A DNA stretch of 64,000 bases, taken from Piromyces finnis finn (Eukaryota; Fungi; Neocallimastigomycota). Below, in pieces: positions 47,916 to 64,000 of the stretch (its first letter is position 1; the number at the start of each line of letters is the position of its first letter). A program made the translations under genes and the position numbers. The stretch covers positions 1 through 64,000 of the forward strand of contig MCFH01000018.1 of the NCBI GenBank assembly GCA_002104945.1, in the 5' to 3' direction. The notes beneath the pieces were generated by a model. It was not told the DNA's origin, ran no database searches, and worked only from the letters and a program-made list of their open reading frames with translations.

Positions 47916-50900
47916 ATGAATATTGATATACAAGAAAAATCTGAAATTAATAATTTCTCTGTTAAGAGAAATGGAAGTAAAAGTAATTTAATAGAAATTT
48001 CTGAAAATGAATTCAATAATATATATACGCATAATCGTACTGGAAGTAAATCAAATTTAACCAATAATTCAAAATTTACACATGCTAGAAGTAGTAGTAA
48101 ATCAAGTATTACAAACATATTTAGTAAACGTATAGGAACTTTCAATAGAACAGTAAAGATTAATGATAGAGGTAGCTCACTACCAAAAAATAATGTAGAT
48201 TCCCACTCACATGTTCACAAGCAATCATTTAATAATTTAAGAGGAAACTCTTCAAATGATTTCTTAATACAAACTAGAGAAAGTTCATTATTATATAGTA
48301 ACAATAATTCTGTCAATAATAATACAAATAATCCTGTTGTTTCTAGCAATGTGCCATATTCAAGCCATTCAAGAGAAAATTTGAATTATTTATATCACTT
48401 TACAAAACTTTCACCAACATCTTCACCAAGAGATGTAACTATTCAAAATAACTCACCATTAAAGAATGCTATAAATGAAAATACACCTCCTATACTAAAC
48501 ATTAATCATTTCACAAAAAGTAATAATTTAGCAAATCATTATTCACCTACTTCAGCGACTTCCGTTTCTCCAAAATACCCAAGAGAAAATAGAGATAATT
48601 ATTACCAAAAAGGAAGTTATAATAAATATAATTTTCATACACCAGCTGATTCAAAAGGTATTAATTTTTATTTTAAAAAAATATAAATAAAATATAATGT
48701 TGATATTTTTTTTGTTATATATAATTTATTATTGTAATTTAATATCTAATTATTATTATTATTATTGTTTAATAAATTAATATCTAATTAATTTTAATAC
48801 AATATTGTAATTTATAGAAATAATTCAAAAATCAGCATTAAGAAATAAGAAAATGAAACAATGGACATTAAATGATGTTCTTGTTTGGTTAACTGAAAAT
48901 AATTTGGAAAAATACAAAGAAACTTTCAAAAGTATGAAATAAATAATTAAATTTTTATAATTTCTAATATTTTATTCACTATTTATAAAAGTAATTGATA
49001 ATATTTAACTGTAATATTAAACTATTATTTTTTTTTATTTAAAAAATTAGATATGAAAATGGATGGGAAAACATTGATAAAACAAAATTACGAAACTTTA
49101 ATTGATATATCAATTTTAGATAAAGTAAAAATAATATCATTAAGAAATTCAGTATTACAATTTGAAAAAGAGAATGAAATGGTAAAGATATAATAATTTT
49201 CTATTAATTATAAGAATTTAAATAATAATCTTTTTTTTTTTTTTTTAAATTATAAACATGTTAATATATTTTTTATAATGTATTATTATTATTTTATTAT
49301 TAATACTATTACATGGTATTAGACTTCAAATAATAACAGCAATATTATTACAAATAATTCAAATAATAATTCGATTCCATTATATACCCAAACTCTTCAA
49401 AGATCTGAAAATTTGTATGTAAACCCAAGAGAAGTTGATATATTAAAAGATGAAGTATATCATAATTTAATAAAATCTAGAAGTTTCGAATCATTAGTAA
49501 CAGCAAATAATAAAGAAGATGATAATAGTACACCAATTTCTGAAAATATGATATATACTTTACCAAGAAAATTAGCAGATGATACAGCAGTAAAAATATC
49601 AACATTATCAAGGACTACTTCTTTAAAAAAGAAAAAACTAATAAAAGATGATAGTTTAAACCAAACACCTGTTATTACCCCAAGATCTTCATCTAGAAAT
49701 ATAGAAAAAAATAGAGTTAGAAGAAAACATGATTATGTTCATGATAATATTAAAGTACAAACTCCAACTAGTTCAGGAAGTAAATCAGCTACTCCATTAA
49801 AAGATAAACATTTCTTATTTAATTTTGCTAATTTACCAAATTCTGCAAAAGAACCAACATTTGAAATGACTTCAAATTACATGCAAAATTCTATTAAATC
49901 AGCAGATGCTAAGGGATATGAAAATATTTTTAAAGAAGAATTAAAAATAGACAATAATGCAAATGTTTCTCCATTACTTCGTGGTGCTAAAAGTTTAAAT
50001 AATTTAACATCACCTTCTATCACATTAATTCCAAAATTTCTTATTAAAATTTCCAATACATCAAAAACCCAATCTCATATAATTGATATTACAAATTATA
50101 CTGATGAAGTTAAATTATGGGAAAGAATTTTAACAAAATTTGATATAAGATCAAATAAAGATAGTTTTGAAAAATATTCCATTATTCTTGTAAAAAATGG
50201 ACAAAATGGTATTTATAAAAATTTATATCTTTTATTTATAATTATATAATTTATTCTCTAATATTAACTATCATATATAAATATTTATAATTTTATATTT
50301 ATTTATTTTTATAAATAATATTACAAAAATAAATAGTTACTTTAAGTACAACTGATTTAATAAATATGATTAAAATTAATAAAAGTAATACTATGATTGA
50401 ATTAGTATTGGAAAATAAAATAAAACCAATGGAAATTACAAGACCATTAATAAAAAATAAAAATATTCGAAATATCACAGAAACAATCAAAATAAATAAT
50501 ATTAAATTAACATCAGTGCCACCAAAAGATAAACATAATTTGTTAACTAATATTAAACCAGATATAAAAAGATCAGAAAAATTAAAGAAATTTGTTGGTG
50601 AAAGACCACCAAGTATGTTAATTTGTGATCAATTAGAACAATATTTCCCAGAAGTTAATAAAAGTAAAAGTGAAAAAATTAAGAGTATTGTATTGGAAAA
50701 TATCAAAGTTAAAAGACTTAGCCGTTTATCAAGGCTTTCTCAAAGTCAATTATCCCTTTCAAGTTTTGATGAACGTAGTTTATTAGGAAATATCTCTGAA
50801 GATTTTGAATATGATATAGATAACGATGAAAACTTAATGCTTGATGCTCCAAAAAAGATTTCTATTGGTGATAAGAGAAATAGTCGCAAGCTTTCCATTA

Positions 50901-53431
50901 TTACTTCACCTGACAAGCTAAAAGAATTAAGTAAAACAAATAGAATTAAAAGTATTTATGGAGATATAGAAAGTGATATTGTAATGAATGAAATTATTTC
51001 CAATGAAAATCTTCCCAATGAAGATATTGACGAAAGTGAATATACAAATGAAGATATTTATACAAATGAAATTACTGATTATAGTTTTAGTAGTGAAATA
51101 TCTTCAGAAGCAAAGACTTTTGAAGATACAAATATTGGCACAAATACTTCAACATCTTTTACCGAAAAACTTAACAACTTCAATAAGAATTATAATAAAG
51201 ATTTAATGGATAATAATGAAGATGAAAATGATGAAAGTAGCGAAATTGATCATGTTGGAGGAAGTAAGAGAAGAGGTCAATATATAAATGAGGGCACAGA
51301 CACAGCCATTAAACGTAATACTAGAAGTTTTTTAGGCAACATTGAACGTATCTATAATATGAATAATGCCAATCAAAATAAAGAAAATACTACTACTGAG
51401 AGTGATATAGAAATTAATACAGGAATTAGTTCAGAGAATGTCACTGAAAATTCAACTCATATAAGCGTTGAACAAAATGATATAAGTAAAAATTCAACTA
51501 GTGAAAGTGTAGTTATTCCAAGACCAAATATCAGTGAAGCCAGAAGAAATTACAGAGCTTTCAAGGGTATATCTGTTGTTTCAGTAGGTAGAAAATCCAT
51601 CTATTCTATGAATTTAAAACAAAAGATGCCACAAGAAACTCGCTTCTCTATCATGGTTCCTCAAAAGCCAATTCAATGGACAAGAGGCCCATTAATTGGA
51701 CAAGGTTCATTCAGTAAAGTATATCACGGTTTAAATACAGAAACAGGAGAAATTATGGCTGTAAAACAAGTAGAACTTTGTCTTCCAATGAGTCAAGAAA
51801 ATGATGAAAGCTCAAAGAAGAAAAATCAACAAATGTTAGATGCTTTACATCATGAAATTAAACTTTTAAAGGATTTAAATCATGAAAATATTGTAAGATA
51901 TTTAGGTTTTGAATTAACTGAAACTTCTAGTAATGTCTTCTTGGAATATGTTTCTGGTGGTTCTGTATCTTCTTTAATTGCTAAGATAGGTAAATTTGAA
52001 GAACCTCTTGTAAAAAGTTTAACTTCTCAAATTGCCGCAGGTATGGAATATCTTCATAATCGTAGTATTATTCACAGAGATATTAAAGGTGCTAATATTT
52101 TGGTTGATGAGGATGGTATCGCCAAAATTTCTGATTTTGGTATTTCCAAAAAGAATGAATATGAAATGGCTTATAAATATAATTCCCGTATGTCCTTCCA
52201 AGGTTCCATCTTTTGGATGGCTCCAGAAGTTATTCGTGGTAAGGGATATAGTGCTAAAGTTGATATTTGGAGTTTAGGTTGTGTAGTTTTAGAAATGTTT
52301 ACCGGGGTTCATCCATGGAAGCAATTTAATGAAGTTCAAACTGTTATGTATAATTTGGGTATGATGAATAAGCCTTACATTCCAAAACGTCTTTCTCCAG
52401 AAAGTCAAAATCTTTTAAATATGTGTTTAGATGGTAATCCTGAAAAACGTCCTACAGCTAAGCAACTATTAGCTCATTCCTTCTGTAAGCCATCAGAAGT
52501 TCCATTTAATTTTAAGGAATATTATCAACACGCTATTGAAAGGGTGAATAAATTTGATGTTTCTGTTATCAGTAATGATGTAACCTCCATTACAAGCAAT
52601 TCAGTGACTTCTTATGATGTAACTACTGAACTTTCAAGCGAAGAAATTATTACAGAAGAAAATGTAACTAGAGATCCAATGGAATTAGAAGACATTGAAG
52701 AAGAAAGAGAAGAAGAAGAAGAAGAGGCTATTAATTTAGATAATATTATACCAAGTGAATTAAAATTAACTGAAGAAGAAAGTGACCAAGATTCTGAAAA
52801 TGAAACAGATCCAGAACTTCTTCCAACACCGAGAAATATTTATCCATCTAAAAAAAGTGACAATACTTCTATTTCCAGTAATAAAATTAATATAATTGAA
52901 GATTCAGTAGATTTAATTACTACTTCATCTCAAGAAAATAAAGAAAAAAAGAGTGAAGAAGAAGAGAAACTAAGAAATATAAAAAGACTTAGTCGTAACA
53001 ATACCAACACTACTTTAAGTAACCCTAAATCTTTATTGAATGGTACCTCAACATTCTCATCTTTAACTTCCACTCTTTCTTTAACTAGTACTTCATTTTC
53101 TTCACTTTCTAGTTCTCTTTCTTCTCTTAGCTCATCCTTTTATACCGGAAGTTCTGAATTGAACACCGTATTTAATAAACCATCAACATCTTCTTTCACC
53201 ACATCTTCAGAACCTATTTTTGAAAAAGATGAAGAGGAATTAATCGAAACCGGTCATGAAACCCATTCACTCCTTTTAACTAATAATGATAAATTAAATA
53301 GTTTAACCTATAAAGTCTCTAATATGTCTCTTTCAAAAATAGCGGATGAAGCTCAATCTCGTTCTAGCCCAGTTCTTTCCACCCCTAGAACTCCCGGTAC
53401 ACCAACTACACCAAAGCAAATTAAATGTTAA
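47916..53431 (+). CDS. STE11: MAP kinase kinase kinase of the Ste11/Bck1 (MEKK) group, with a SAM domain and a putative RA-like region
   Basis: SAM-like exons (WTLNDVLVWLTENNLEKYKETF...MDGKTL); GERPPSMLICDQLEQYFP motif; complete kinase domain (GQGSFSKV, MAVKQVE, HRDIKGANIL, DFG, QGSIFWMAPE, DIWSLGC). The symbol is a best guess; some subdomain features are Bck1-like. Confidence 0.85.
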
Positions 53432-61535: not shown

Positions 61536-64000
61536 ATGACGTCAATGCAATCAACCTCCATAAATTCTACTAGTGTATCTAGTAATTATAGTGATGTTAT
61601 CTCTAATTCTGAACTTTCAACTGCAGTACATTCACGTGCGGATTCCATGTCAGAAACTAAATCATATGTTTCTTCCTTTTCATCAATGGCATCAAGTATT
61701 AATAGTGGAAATTCTGCTACTGACTTGTAAAAATAATAAATTATGATTTATATATAAAATTTTAATTAAGCAGTTATTATATTACATATTCTAATAAAAG
61801 TCAATAACTAATCTATTTTTTTTTTTCGTTTTTACATTCTTTAAAACCAATATAACCTTCACCATTTAAAATATCATTATTCTGGTGACATTTATACACT
61901 AATATTATTGAACAAATATTAATGATAATATATTAATATGATAATGAATAATGAATAATTCAATATTATTTAATCAAATATATATATAAATTATTTATTC
62001 GAATTAAAATTAAACAAATAAAAATAAATAAAGAATTGCTGCTAAAATAGCGAATGAATTAGATGATGGAAAATCTTTTTTTAGACAACAGATTTTTCGT
62101 ATCGTTACTAGTCGAGTATTTAATAATATTATGTTGGGTATTATTTTAATAAATACAGTAACAATGGCATTACAAGTAATAAAAAGTTTTAATTCAAAAT
62201 ATTGTATGTTTACTTTTTCTATATTCATATTTTAAAGAAATTTAAATACGATTGGAAATTTCATAATAAATACTTTTCAATCTCTTAAATTTTTATTCTT
62301 TAATGTGATATTTTGTTTTTATTGGAAAATAATATATATGCTAATAATTTTTTCATATAGCTTGGTATCTAGCAATTATTGATCAAGTATTTCTGGTAAT
62401 ATATATATGGGAATGTTTATTGAAGTTATACGCATGGAGATTATATTATTTTAAATCAGGATGGAATGTTTTTGGTAAATATTTAAAAAAAAAAAAAAAA
62501 AAAAAAACATATAAAAATAATATTAATTGTATTTCAACAATTTAATTAAAACATTATAATATATAATTAAATATATTACATTAGATTTCTTTATTGTTTT
62601 AATTAGTATTATTACATGGTTTTTACCTGAAATATTAACTTCATCAGCTAATTTTGATGCAAAATTCCTTAGAGTATTGAGAGTTATGAGAGCTTTTCGT
62701 GCAATTCGTTCTATTCGTGTTTTAAGAGCTATTAATTTCTTACGTTCTTTACAAGTTGTCGTTTCTGTGTTGATTCGTTCAATTCCAGCCATGGCAAATA
62801 TTGTATTTTTAGCTTTTATTATCATCTGTAGGTTTCATTTATGCTATAATAAATAAATTATTAAATGAATTAATAATATTAATATAATTTAATCTTTTCA
62901 ATTTTTTATGCCATGAAAATATATTATTATATTTAATTGTTTTTATACAAAAAAAAAAAAAAAAGATATTTTCATGATTATTGGAACAGCCTCATTTGGA
63001 AAATATGATGAAAAGCATTTTGGATCTTTATTTAAAACATTATTTAGATTAATTCAATTAATGACTTTGGATGATTGGAGTGTTATTTATGAAGAGAATA
63101 GAGATAAAGCACCTATTATTTGGTTCTATTTAGCTATTTTTATTGTATTAGAAACTTTTATTTTTTTGAAGTAAGTCAAAAAAAAAAAAAAAAAAAAAGC
63201 ATAATAGATATATTCATTATTATAAATTAACGGCAGTAAAATTTTAAATTATTTTATATTCATTTATATTTGTATGTATATAATTATATAAAAGTCTTTT
63301 TGTTGCTGTAATTGTTAGTAATCTTCAAAGTTCTAAAAATAGCAAGATTAAAAAAAGAACAAGGGTTAAACAGGTATATACCTGAAAAATAGAAATGCAT
63401 ATATATAGTTTAATGTAAATGATTAATAATTCTAAATATTGTTTTAAAACAATAATATATATAGAAAATTAATGACGATTTTATGGAAATAAACAATAAC
63501 ACAAATGCTTATAAAAAAAAAGATAAATTAGATGATAGAAGAATTGGTTTATATGATAATAACGATGAGGATTTCAAATCTCAAATCGGAAAGTATTATG
63601 GAGAAACAATACCAGAAAGGTTTATATCTAGAGTTAAAATTAAAATTTTATATCAATAAATAATAAATATTTAATATTTATTTTTTTTATCGCTTTTAGA
63701 CAACAATTATTATTATCAAAGTATTTCATGTTATTAGCTGCACTAGAATATAATAATAGTTCATATAATAAACAACAAAAGATTTTAGATGATTTAGGTA
63801 TATTTATATGGAACAATTATATGAAAAACTGTATAATATTAATATATTTTAATATTATTAATGATAACATCTTTTCATTTTAATAATAATAATATGAATA
63901 TGGATATGGATATAATACGTTAGTTGATCTTACCATTGAAAAGGTTGAAGAGGGTGACTTATTGAACCCAATTGATGATAAAGCCGTTAATGATGCTGCC
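61536..64000 (+). CDS. CATSPER1: CatSper1-like cation channel pore subunit (single 6TM domain), truncated by the window end
   Basis: In-frame GT-AG splicing gives S1 (FNNIMLGIILINTVTMALQ), S2 (IDQVFLVIYIWECLLKL), S3 (WNVFDFFIVLIS), S4 (KFLRVLRVMRAFRAIRSIRVLR), S5, pore LMTLDDWSVIY, S6 (FIFLNLFVAVIVSNLQ), and a C-terminal coiled-coil-like segment (KYFMLLAALEYNNSSYNKQQKILDDL). Confidence 0.88.

Follow-up and report, generated by a model that had tools for sequence, protein, structure and literature searches.

The window analysed here is a stretch of 64,000 nucleotides (nt), positions 1 to 64,000 of contig MCFH01000018.1 (C90:1-64000 in our numbering) of Piromyces finnis, which is an anaerobic gut fungus, as an earlier note on this DNA had supposed. 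Its last part, positions 61536-64000 of the plus strand, is an intact, spliced and transcribed CatSper1 pore-subunit gene. The main Ca2+ channel in the flagella of animal sperm is CatSper, a target for contraception; it is a complex of the flagellar membrane, and the Ca2+ that enters through it reshapes the beat. We hold with good confidence that the locus is the P. finnis orthologue of CatSper1, that is, one of the four distinct CatSper pore subunits, and would belong to a flagellar Ca2+ complex. A single exon was the query unit in all searches, and the genome scans covered the whole assembly (56.46 megabases in 232 contigs).

The coding sequence, on the plus strand, is divided among nine exons, whose summed lengths come to 1353 nt, or 450 codons and a stop. 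All eight introns are of the GT..AG type, measure 80-307 nt and are compatible in phase; the G+C content of the window is 19.5%. The stop codon, TAA, lies at contig positions 64019-64021, 21 bases beyond the end of the window, where the sequence was taken from record L001. The coordinates and contents of the exons are collected in Table 1. Exons 3, 4 and 5 each score above the cut-off of the ion-channel domain Ion_trans (PF00520), and jointly they cover profile positions 35-222 of 241, which amounts to one six-helix repeat. Helix S1 (exon 2) and the end of helix S6 (exon 6) align with homologues and complete a single-repeat channel. The S4 helix of CatSper1 is the most charged among the four CatSper subunits, and the S4 encoded here is a charged voltage sensor as well.

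The pore is of particular interest. The earlier note had read the filter TLDDW at 63064-63078, and it is encoded exactly there, on the plus strand within exon 5. The accompanying claim, that the flanking pore and S6 sequence parallels CatSper1, is borne out by HMMER, which aligns TLDDWSVIY...FIFL of the window with TLDDWSLIY...FIFL of two CatSper1 chains in the Protein Data Bank (PDB), 9ubw_A (E 1e-9, 41.6 bits) and 7eeb_A (8e-9). These are the best PDB matches of the pore exon, and CatSper1 is the sole CatSper chain matched by exon 4 (33.8 bits). When the pore exon was compared by phmmer with 1.84 billion representative proteins, 253 matches were returned, and TLDDW was present in 83 of the best 150. 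The closest full-length relatives are proteins of chytrids and blastoclads, several of them named "Cation channel sperm-associated protein 1", followed by the CatSper1 of fish, barnacle, brittle star and Carpediemonas.

Identity to the fungal CatSper1 proteins (Polyrhizophydium, Quaeritorhiza, Allomyces, Blastocladiella, Catenaria) is 45-65% per exon over S1-S6, with exon 3 at 54-68% to the chytrid and blastoclad sequences, and the C-terminal segment of exon 8 reaches 60-72% (62-72% to the chytrid proteins); a fish CatSper1 (P0014) aligns with this segment as well. The fungal proteins also agree with that of P. finnis in length, layout and subclade of the tree described below. They differ in the fourth residue of the filter, which varies among them (TLDEW, TLDRW, TLDNW, TLDKW), and TFDSW is found among fungal members too; moreover, theirs are annotated genes, while the searches recovered no annotated counterpart from a gut fungus. 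Animal CatSper1 (mouse and human CATSPER1; chain A of 7EEB and of 9UBW) shares with the P. finnis protein a single six-transmembrane (6TM) repeat with a highly charged S4, an identical TLDDW followed by S-x-IY, an S6 ending in FIFLNL and a helical segment after S6, and it ranks first among the PDB matches to the pore exon. The likeness has its limits, with an identity of about 45% that is confined to the pore exon, 450 residues in P. finnis as against 686 or more in mouse, and a short, Ser-rich N-terminus in place of the long, His-rich one of mammals. The setting also differs, sperm in the one case and the asexual zoospores of an anaerobic fungus in the other.

A single 6TM repeat with such a filter could also belong to a bacterial-type Nav or EukCat-like channel, a single-domain homotetramer unrelated to the CatSper complex. 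BacNav channels (NaChBac, NavAb, NavMs) have the same architecture, built from one 6TM repeat around a four-fold pore with a T-L-acidic-x-W filter, and in the PDB search with the pore exon they come second after CatSper1 (35.6 bits at best, E 8e-8). Their filter, however, contains Glu (TLESW or TLEGW) where the P. finnis filter has Asp, and they work as homotetramers without accessory subunits, whereas the P. finnis genome does contain genes for partner and accessory subunits. In addition, the conserved C-terminal segment common to fungal and fish CatSper1 speaks against a channel of this kind, as do the phylogenetic results. The tree was inferred with IQ-TREE under the LG+C20 site mixture (posterior mean site frequency approximation, PMSF), on a backbone of 62 full-length proteins: 31 CatSper1 or CatSper1-like sequences (from fungi, animals, protists and unnamed sources), 13 CatSper2 (three of them gut-fungal), six mammalian CatSper3 and 12 BacNav. 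Window exons 2, 3, 4 and 5 each formed a row of their own, which made a joined gene model unnecessary. Placed independently, all four fell inside the CatSper1 clade, exons 3-5 among chytrid CatSper1 proteins, and the bipartition that sets CatSper1 and the window exons apart from CatSper2, CatSper3 and BacNav received 99% ultrafast bootstrap and 99% SH-aLRT (Shimodaira-Hasegawa-like approximate likelihood ratio test) support. BacNav formed a clade of its own (98/94), without the window exons. Forcing the window exons to join BacNav cost 36.8 log-likelihood units and was rejected by the approximately unbiased (AU) test (p 0.00095). On these comparisons the BacNav or EukCat alternative is largely refuted, and we regard it as very improbable.

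The same tree bears on the position of the gene within the family. The locus could encode a CatSper-family pore subunit that is not a strict CatSper1 orthologue, namely a paralogue within the fungi that came to TLDDW by convergence and has another place in the tetramer. Several paralogues that are all named "CatSper1" occur in Blastocladiomycota, the fungal filters vary as noted above (TLDEW, TLDRW, TLDNW, TFDSW), the deep branches inside the CatSper1 clade are weak (67/32 and 70/9), and the tree had no CatSper4 references; all of this leaves some room for a paralogue. Against it stand the single CatSper1-type gene found in the genome, beside one each of types 2, 3 and 4, the clade shared with animal CatSper1 at 99/99 versus CatSper2 and CatSper3, and CatSper1 as the best or sole CatSper PDB chain for both large exons. 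A paralogue is thus weighed here as unlikely, if less so than a bacterial-type channel, and orthology to CatSper1 as the better account.

That the gene is real and expressed follows from three independent lines of evidence, conservation, transcription and, for the joint of exons 8 and 9, the homology described further below. A 6.6-kilobase (kb) metagenome contig (L050), reached via a 106-residue open reading frame (ORF) fragment (P0151), contains the orthologous gene of a second gut fungus. Its alignment with eight of the nine exons is free of gaps, at 77-88% identity (exon 1, for example, at 77%), whereas the introns show 37-50% (37% for intron 1) and many gaps. The exception is exon 6, in which the two genes differ in length at the 3' end (67% identity, seven gap columns). 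Of the splice sites, seven of eight donors and all eight acceptors are kept, and the one donor not kept, that of intron 6, lies beside this length difference. As for transcription, intron-less CatSper1 contigs are found in four public runs from three studies, and introns 1-7 are confirmed by them. Intron 2 (157 nt) is missing from contigs of three runs, introns 6 (91 nt) and 7 (80 nt) from contigs of four, and for these three introns the GT..AG joints were recorded directly in transcript contigs. One contig of 1291 nt (record 5 of run X2) spans exon 1 to exon 8, its exon 1 piece stopping at 61726 before exon 2 begins, and its coordinates match introns 1-7 exactly.

These data bear directly on whether the locus might be a decaying or silent relic without a working channel. 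Such a state would fit the failure to recover a full-length protein from public protein sets, and odd internal deletions do occur in the contigs of one run. The 450-codon frame is nonetheless intact over nine exons, the exons are conserved far above the introns and mostly indel-free relative to the other gut fungus, correctly spliced transcripts are found in three studies, and nothing of the filter or of the S4 charges has been lost. A relic is therefore scarcely credible to us, and we continue to regard the locus as an intact, transcribed CatSper1 gene. The deletions in question, both of the non-canonical CT..AC type, are at 62392-62627 and 63828-63934 (L001:993-1228 and 2429-2535), and the second preserves the reading frame. 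Seen in run X1 alone, they were set aside as artefacts of assembly or template switching.

Of the subunits with which CatSper1 would assemble, the partner pore genes were found by an Ion_trans scan of the genome and by reading the candidates. The scan yielded three further single-repeat channels with T-x-D-x-W filters, so that one gene each of CatSper1, CatSper2, CatSper3-like and CatSper4-like type was found (Table 1). The mammalian filters of CatSper1-4 are TLDDW, TLDHW, TVDGW (Bos taurus P0398) and TQDGW; the last three are those given in the earlier note, and all match the sequences. The CatSper2 assignment draws on the orthologue of Anaeromyces robustus (P0333), which matches mouse CatSper2 (7eeb_B) with E 8e-67 over 428 residues, CatSper3 following at 97 bits. 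Among the auxiliary subunits, beta, delta/epsilon-type and TMEM249 domains all exceed their Pfam cut-offs. Gamma (CATSPERG, PF15064 and PF22851) has no exon-level Pfam match in the genome, which is not evidence of its absence, and the same is true of the CATSPERD beta-propeller (PF15020) and CatSper tau (PF15729), likewise with zero exon-level genome matches that do not argue for absence. The earlier note had named two outcomes that would speak against its CatSper1 reading, a grouping with bacterial-type Nav or EukCat channels and a genome without other CatSper subunits. Because the exons are placed in CatSper1 and the genome does contain other CatSper subunits, what was found is the opposite on both counts.

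Several other loci were considered and dropped. Those with TLDSW or TSDSW pores on C11 and C3, taken up as possible CatSper2, sit in multi-repeat channel genes of the four-domain type; GYGD marks the loci at C150:414 kb, on C146 and on C178 as K+ channels; and those on C2 and C200 are voltage-sensor-only genes.

Table 1. Features of the P. finnis CatSper1 gene (positions in the window) and candidate genes for other CatSper subunits elsewhere in the assembly (contig handle and position). Percentages after L050 are identities to the orthologue of another gut fungus.
Feature	Position	Strand	Content	Basis
Exon 1	61536-61726	+	ATG, Ser-rich cytoplasmic N-terminus with one His	Open frame from ATG
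Exon 2	62034-62203	+	Pre-S1 segment and helix S1	GT..AG; aligns with fungal CatSper1 S1
Exon 3	62361-62474	+	S2, start of S3 (YFKSGWNVF)	Ion_trans 27.7 bits; L050 86%
Exon 4	62585-62827	+	S3, S4 sensor, S4-S5 linker, start of S5	Ion_trans 37.8 bits; L050 87%
S4 voltage sensor	62662-62727	+	K and seven R at every third position, KFLRVLRVMRAFRAIRSIRVLR	Translation
Exon 5	62966-63170	+	S5, pore helix, selectivity filter, most of S6	Ion_trans 27 bits
Selectivity filter	63064-63078	+	TLDDW (T-x-D-x-W, CatSper1 type)	Exon 5, direct reading
Exon 6	63295-63373	+	End of S6 (LFVAVIVSNLQ), basic linker	Aligns with LFVAVIVSNL of Catenaria and Blastocladiella CatSper1
Exon 7	63465-63619	+	Cytoplasmic C-terminal linker	L050 77%, gap-free
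Exon 8	63700-63797	+	Conserved C-terminal helical segment (YFMLLAALEYN...QQKILDDL)	Homology
Exon 9	63924-64021 (in window to 64000)	+	Ends in TAA	L050 82% (intron 8, 40%)
CatSper2	C150, near 160.8 kb		Filter TFDQW	Annotated P. finnis protein BCR36DRAFT_353614 (P0348), 100% in exon cores
CatSper4-like	C1, near 2104 kb		Filter TQDGW	Pore exon matches 9ubw_D, E 4e-15
CatSper3-like	C1, near 605 kb		Filter TSDGW	CatSper3 best single-repeat PDB match, E 1e-5
CATSPERB_C	C146:499406			Pfam 102 bits, above cut-off
CATSPERD-E_C (delta/epsilon-type)	C160:262057			Pfam 30.8 bits, above cut-off
TMEM249	C212:155874			Pfam 44.5 bits, above cut-off

A number of points weigh against a CatSper1 subunit at work in a zoospore complex and should be set beside the evidence above. 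The pore exon, taken by itself, favours CatSper1 over BacNav by only 6 bits, and the rows of the tree, from which CatSper4 was missing, are fragments of 37-80 residues. There is no mammalian-type His-rich N-terminal domain, exon 1 being Ser-rich with one His; since the fungal CatSper1 proteins compared here are also without this domain, it is a mammalian mark rather than one that defines the family. The junction of exons 8 and 9 is supported by conservation and homology, without a listed RNA joint. Joined, the two exons read ...QQKILDDL-VDL..., in agreement with LDDLVDL in Catenaria (P0012) and LDELVDI in Rhizoclosmatium (P0018), and reading through intron 8 gives unrelated sequence and then a stop. 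The four runs are only presumed to be RNA, although spliced, intron-less contigs can hardly be explained from DNA, and they have no bearing on zoospores. The CatSper3 label of the gene near 605 kb on C1 is weak, its match (E 1e-5) being the best among single-repeat channels only, and gamma, as noted, has no match.

If the mouse complex (PDB 7EEB) is a guide, CatSper1, 2, 3 and 4 would be arranged around a central pore, one copy of each, and the Asp that each contributes through its T-x-D-x-W filter (TLDDW, TFDQW, TSDGW and TQDGW) would form a ring of four Asp residues selecting Ca2+. The tetramer would be ringed by large single-pass beta, delta/epsilon-type and gamma subunits and by TMEM249, again as in mouse, and the complex would be located in the flagellar membrane of the zoospore. 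A voltage, pH or chemical cue could then lead to Ca2+ entry and an altered flagellar beat, with turning, chemotaxis toward plant material, or a stop before encystment as the possible outcome. By analogy with sperm, we infer a role of CatSper in zoospore flagellar Ca2+ entry and hence in motility or chemotaxis. A bolder reading can also be put forward, that gut-fungal zoospores run a complete CatSper complex for chemotactic Ca2+ entry in the anoxic rumen while CatSper1, the key subunit, escapes proteome-based surveys because it is absent from the catalogues of all sequenced Neocallimastigomycota. The complete complex would here consist of four pore subunits with beta, gamma, delta/epsilon and theta, and possibly EFCAB9 and tau. 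We offer this reading tentatively, as possible but not quite probable.

The presence of CatSper in a zoosporic fungus is not in itself new, because the Allomyces genes and a fungal flagellum atlas have already been published. Allomyces has been known to possess CatSper genes since the work of Cai and Clapham 2012, to which a bioRxiv preprint (10.1101/230292) refers. The 2026 fungal flagellum atlas gives orthogroups for CATSPER1-4, B, D/E, G, T, EFCAB9 and TMEM249, which are described there as specific to flagellated fungi and not universal among those, and its dataset takes in the proteomes of P. finnis, Piromyces sp. E2, Anaeromyces and two Neocallimastix (PMC13358043). The novelty implied by the earlier note was accordingly overstated, since a catalogue of CatSper1-4 and auxiliary subunits across flagellated fungi already exists and gut-fungal proteomes are part of its dataset. 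No functional study of CatSper in gut fungi was found in the literature.

What may be new is narrow, an apparently unannotated gut-fungal CatSper1 in a family already known. Searches of public protein sets recovered the CatSper2 of P. finnis, Anaeromyces and Neocallimastix but no full-length gut-fungal CatSper1, of which the only traces in protein searches were 106-residue metagenome ORF fragments. For this reason the CatSper1 gene is probably missing from public gut-fungal gene catalogues, its annotation status being deduced from these searches. The negative result rests on the exhaustive phmmer search and on the search with P0003; an alignment word search that missed its own members carries little weight.

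Since CatSper1 appears to be missing from public gut-fungal protein sets, tables of presence and absence built from proteomes, such as that of the 2026 atlas, may score it as absent in the phylum though it is present. If the absence from catalogues holds true, proteome-based surveys under-call the completeness of the CatSper complex in Neocallimastigomycota. There are also consequences beyond gene catalogues. To our knowledge, CatSper has not been functionally expressed outside sperm, and its study has been slowed by this. A culturable fungus with the whole subunit set could provide a further place in which to study CatSper assembly and gating. The gene supports the idea that the CatSper complex is no younger than the common ancestor of animals and fungi, and it provides a concrete candidate for the steering of zoospores toward freshly ingested plant material.

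Some further channel genes were noted in the course of this work. The two voltage-sensor-only genes, at C2:~902370-902750 on the minus strand (L043:2865-3482) and C200:~1093061-1093423 on the plus strand (L044:2376-3209), encode proteins with four helices, an S4 containing R-x-W-R and an acidic or coiled-coil tail, and are Hv1-like in appearance; in human sperm, Hv1 proton channels work in concert with CatSper. A protein of 893 residues returned by the phmmer search with the pore exon (P0076) has two repeats, with TVDDW and TLDNW pores. Leaving aside the CatSper2 family itself, no protein matched the gut-fungal CatSper2 exons better, and it may be a CatSper-like channel in which two subunits are fused. 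At C169:352813-358893 (L012-L014) an unbroken frame of 1760 residues contains several Ion_trans repeats at 142-146 bits each and represents a four-repeat channel of the Cav/Cch1 type, intronless, which is unusual in this intron-rich genome. Near-identical multi-repeat channel loci occur at C3:62-73 kb, C197:259-265 kb, C11:6-13 kb and C3:38-44 kb (L017, L018, L022-L024, L034, L036, L046, L049), with equal bit scores and TLDSW and TSDSW pores. These loci on C3, C197 and C11 are probably haplotigs or recent duplications.

Two observations concern the surroundings of the gene. Within the window, positions 50366-53431 of the plus strand hold an open frame of 1021 residues that begins with ATG, to which no gene product recorded in the contig index corresponds exactly. 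The gene downstream of CatSper1, past the end of the window (C90:64388-64699, L001:2989-3300), is transcribed, and a GT..AG intron of 186 nt was seen in it in all four runs.

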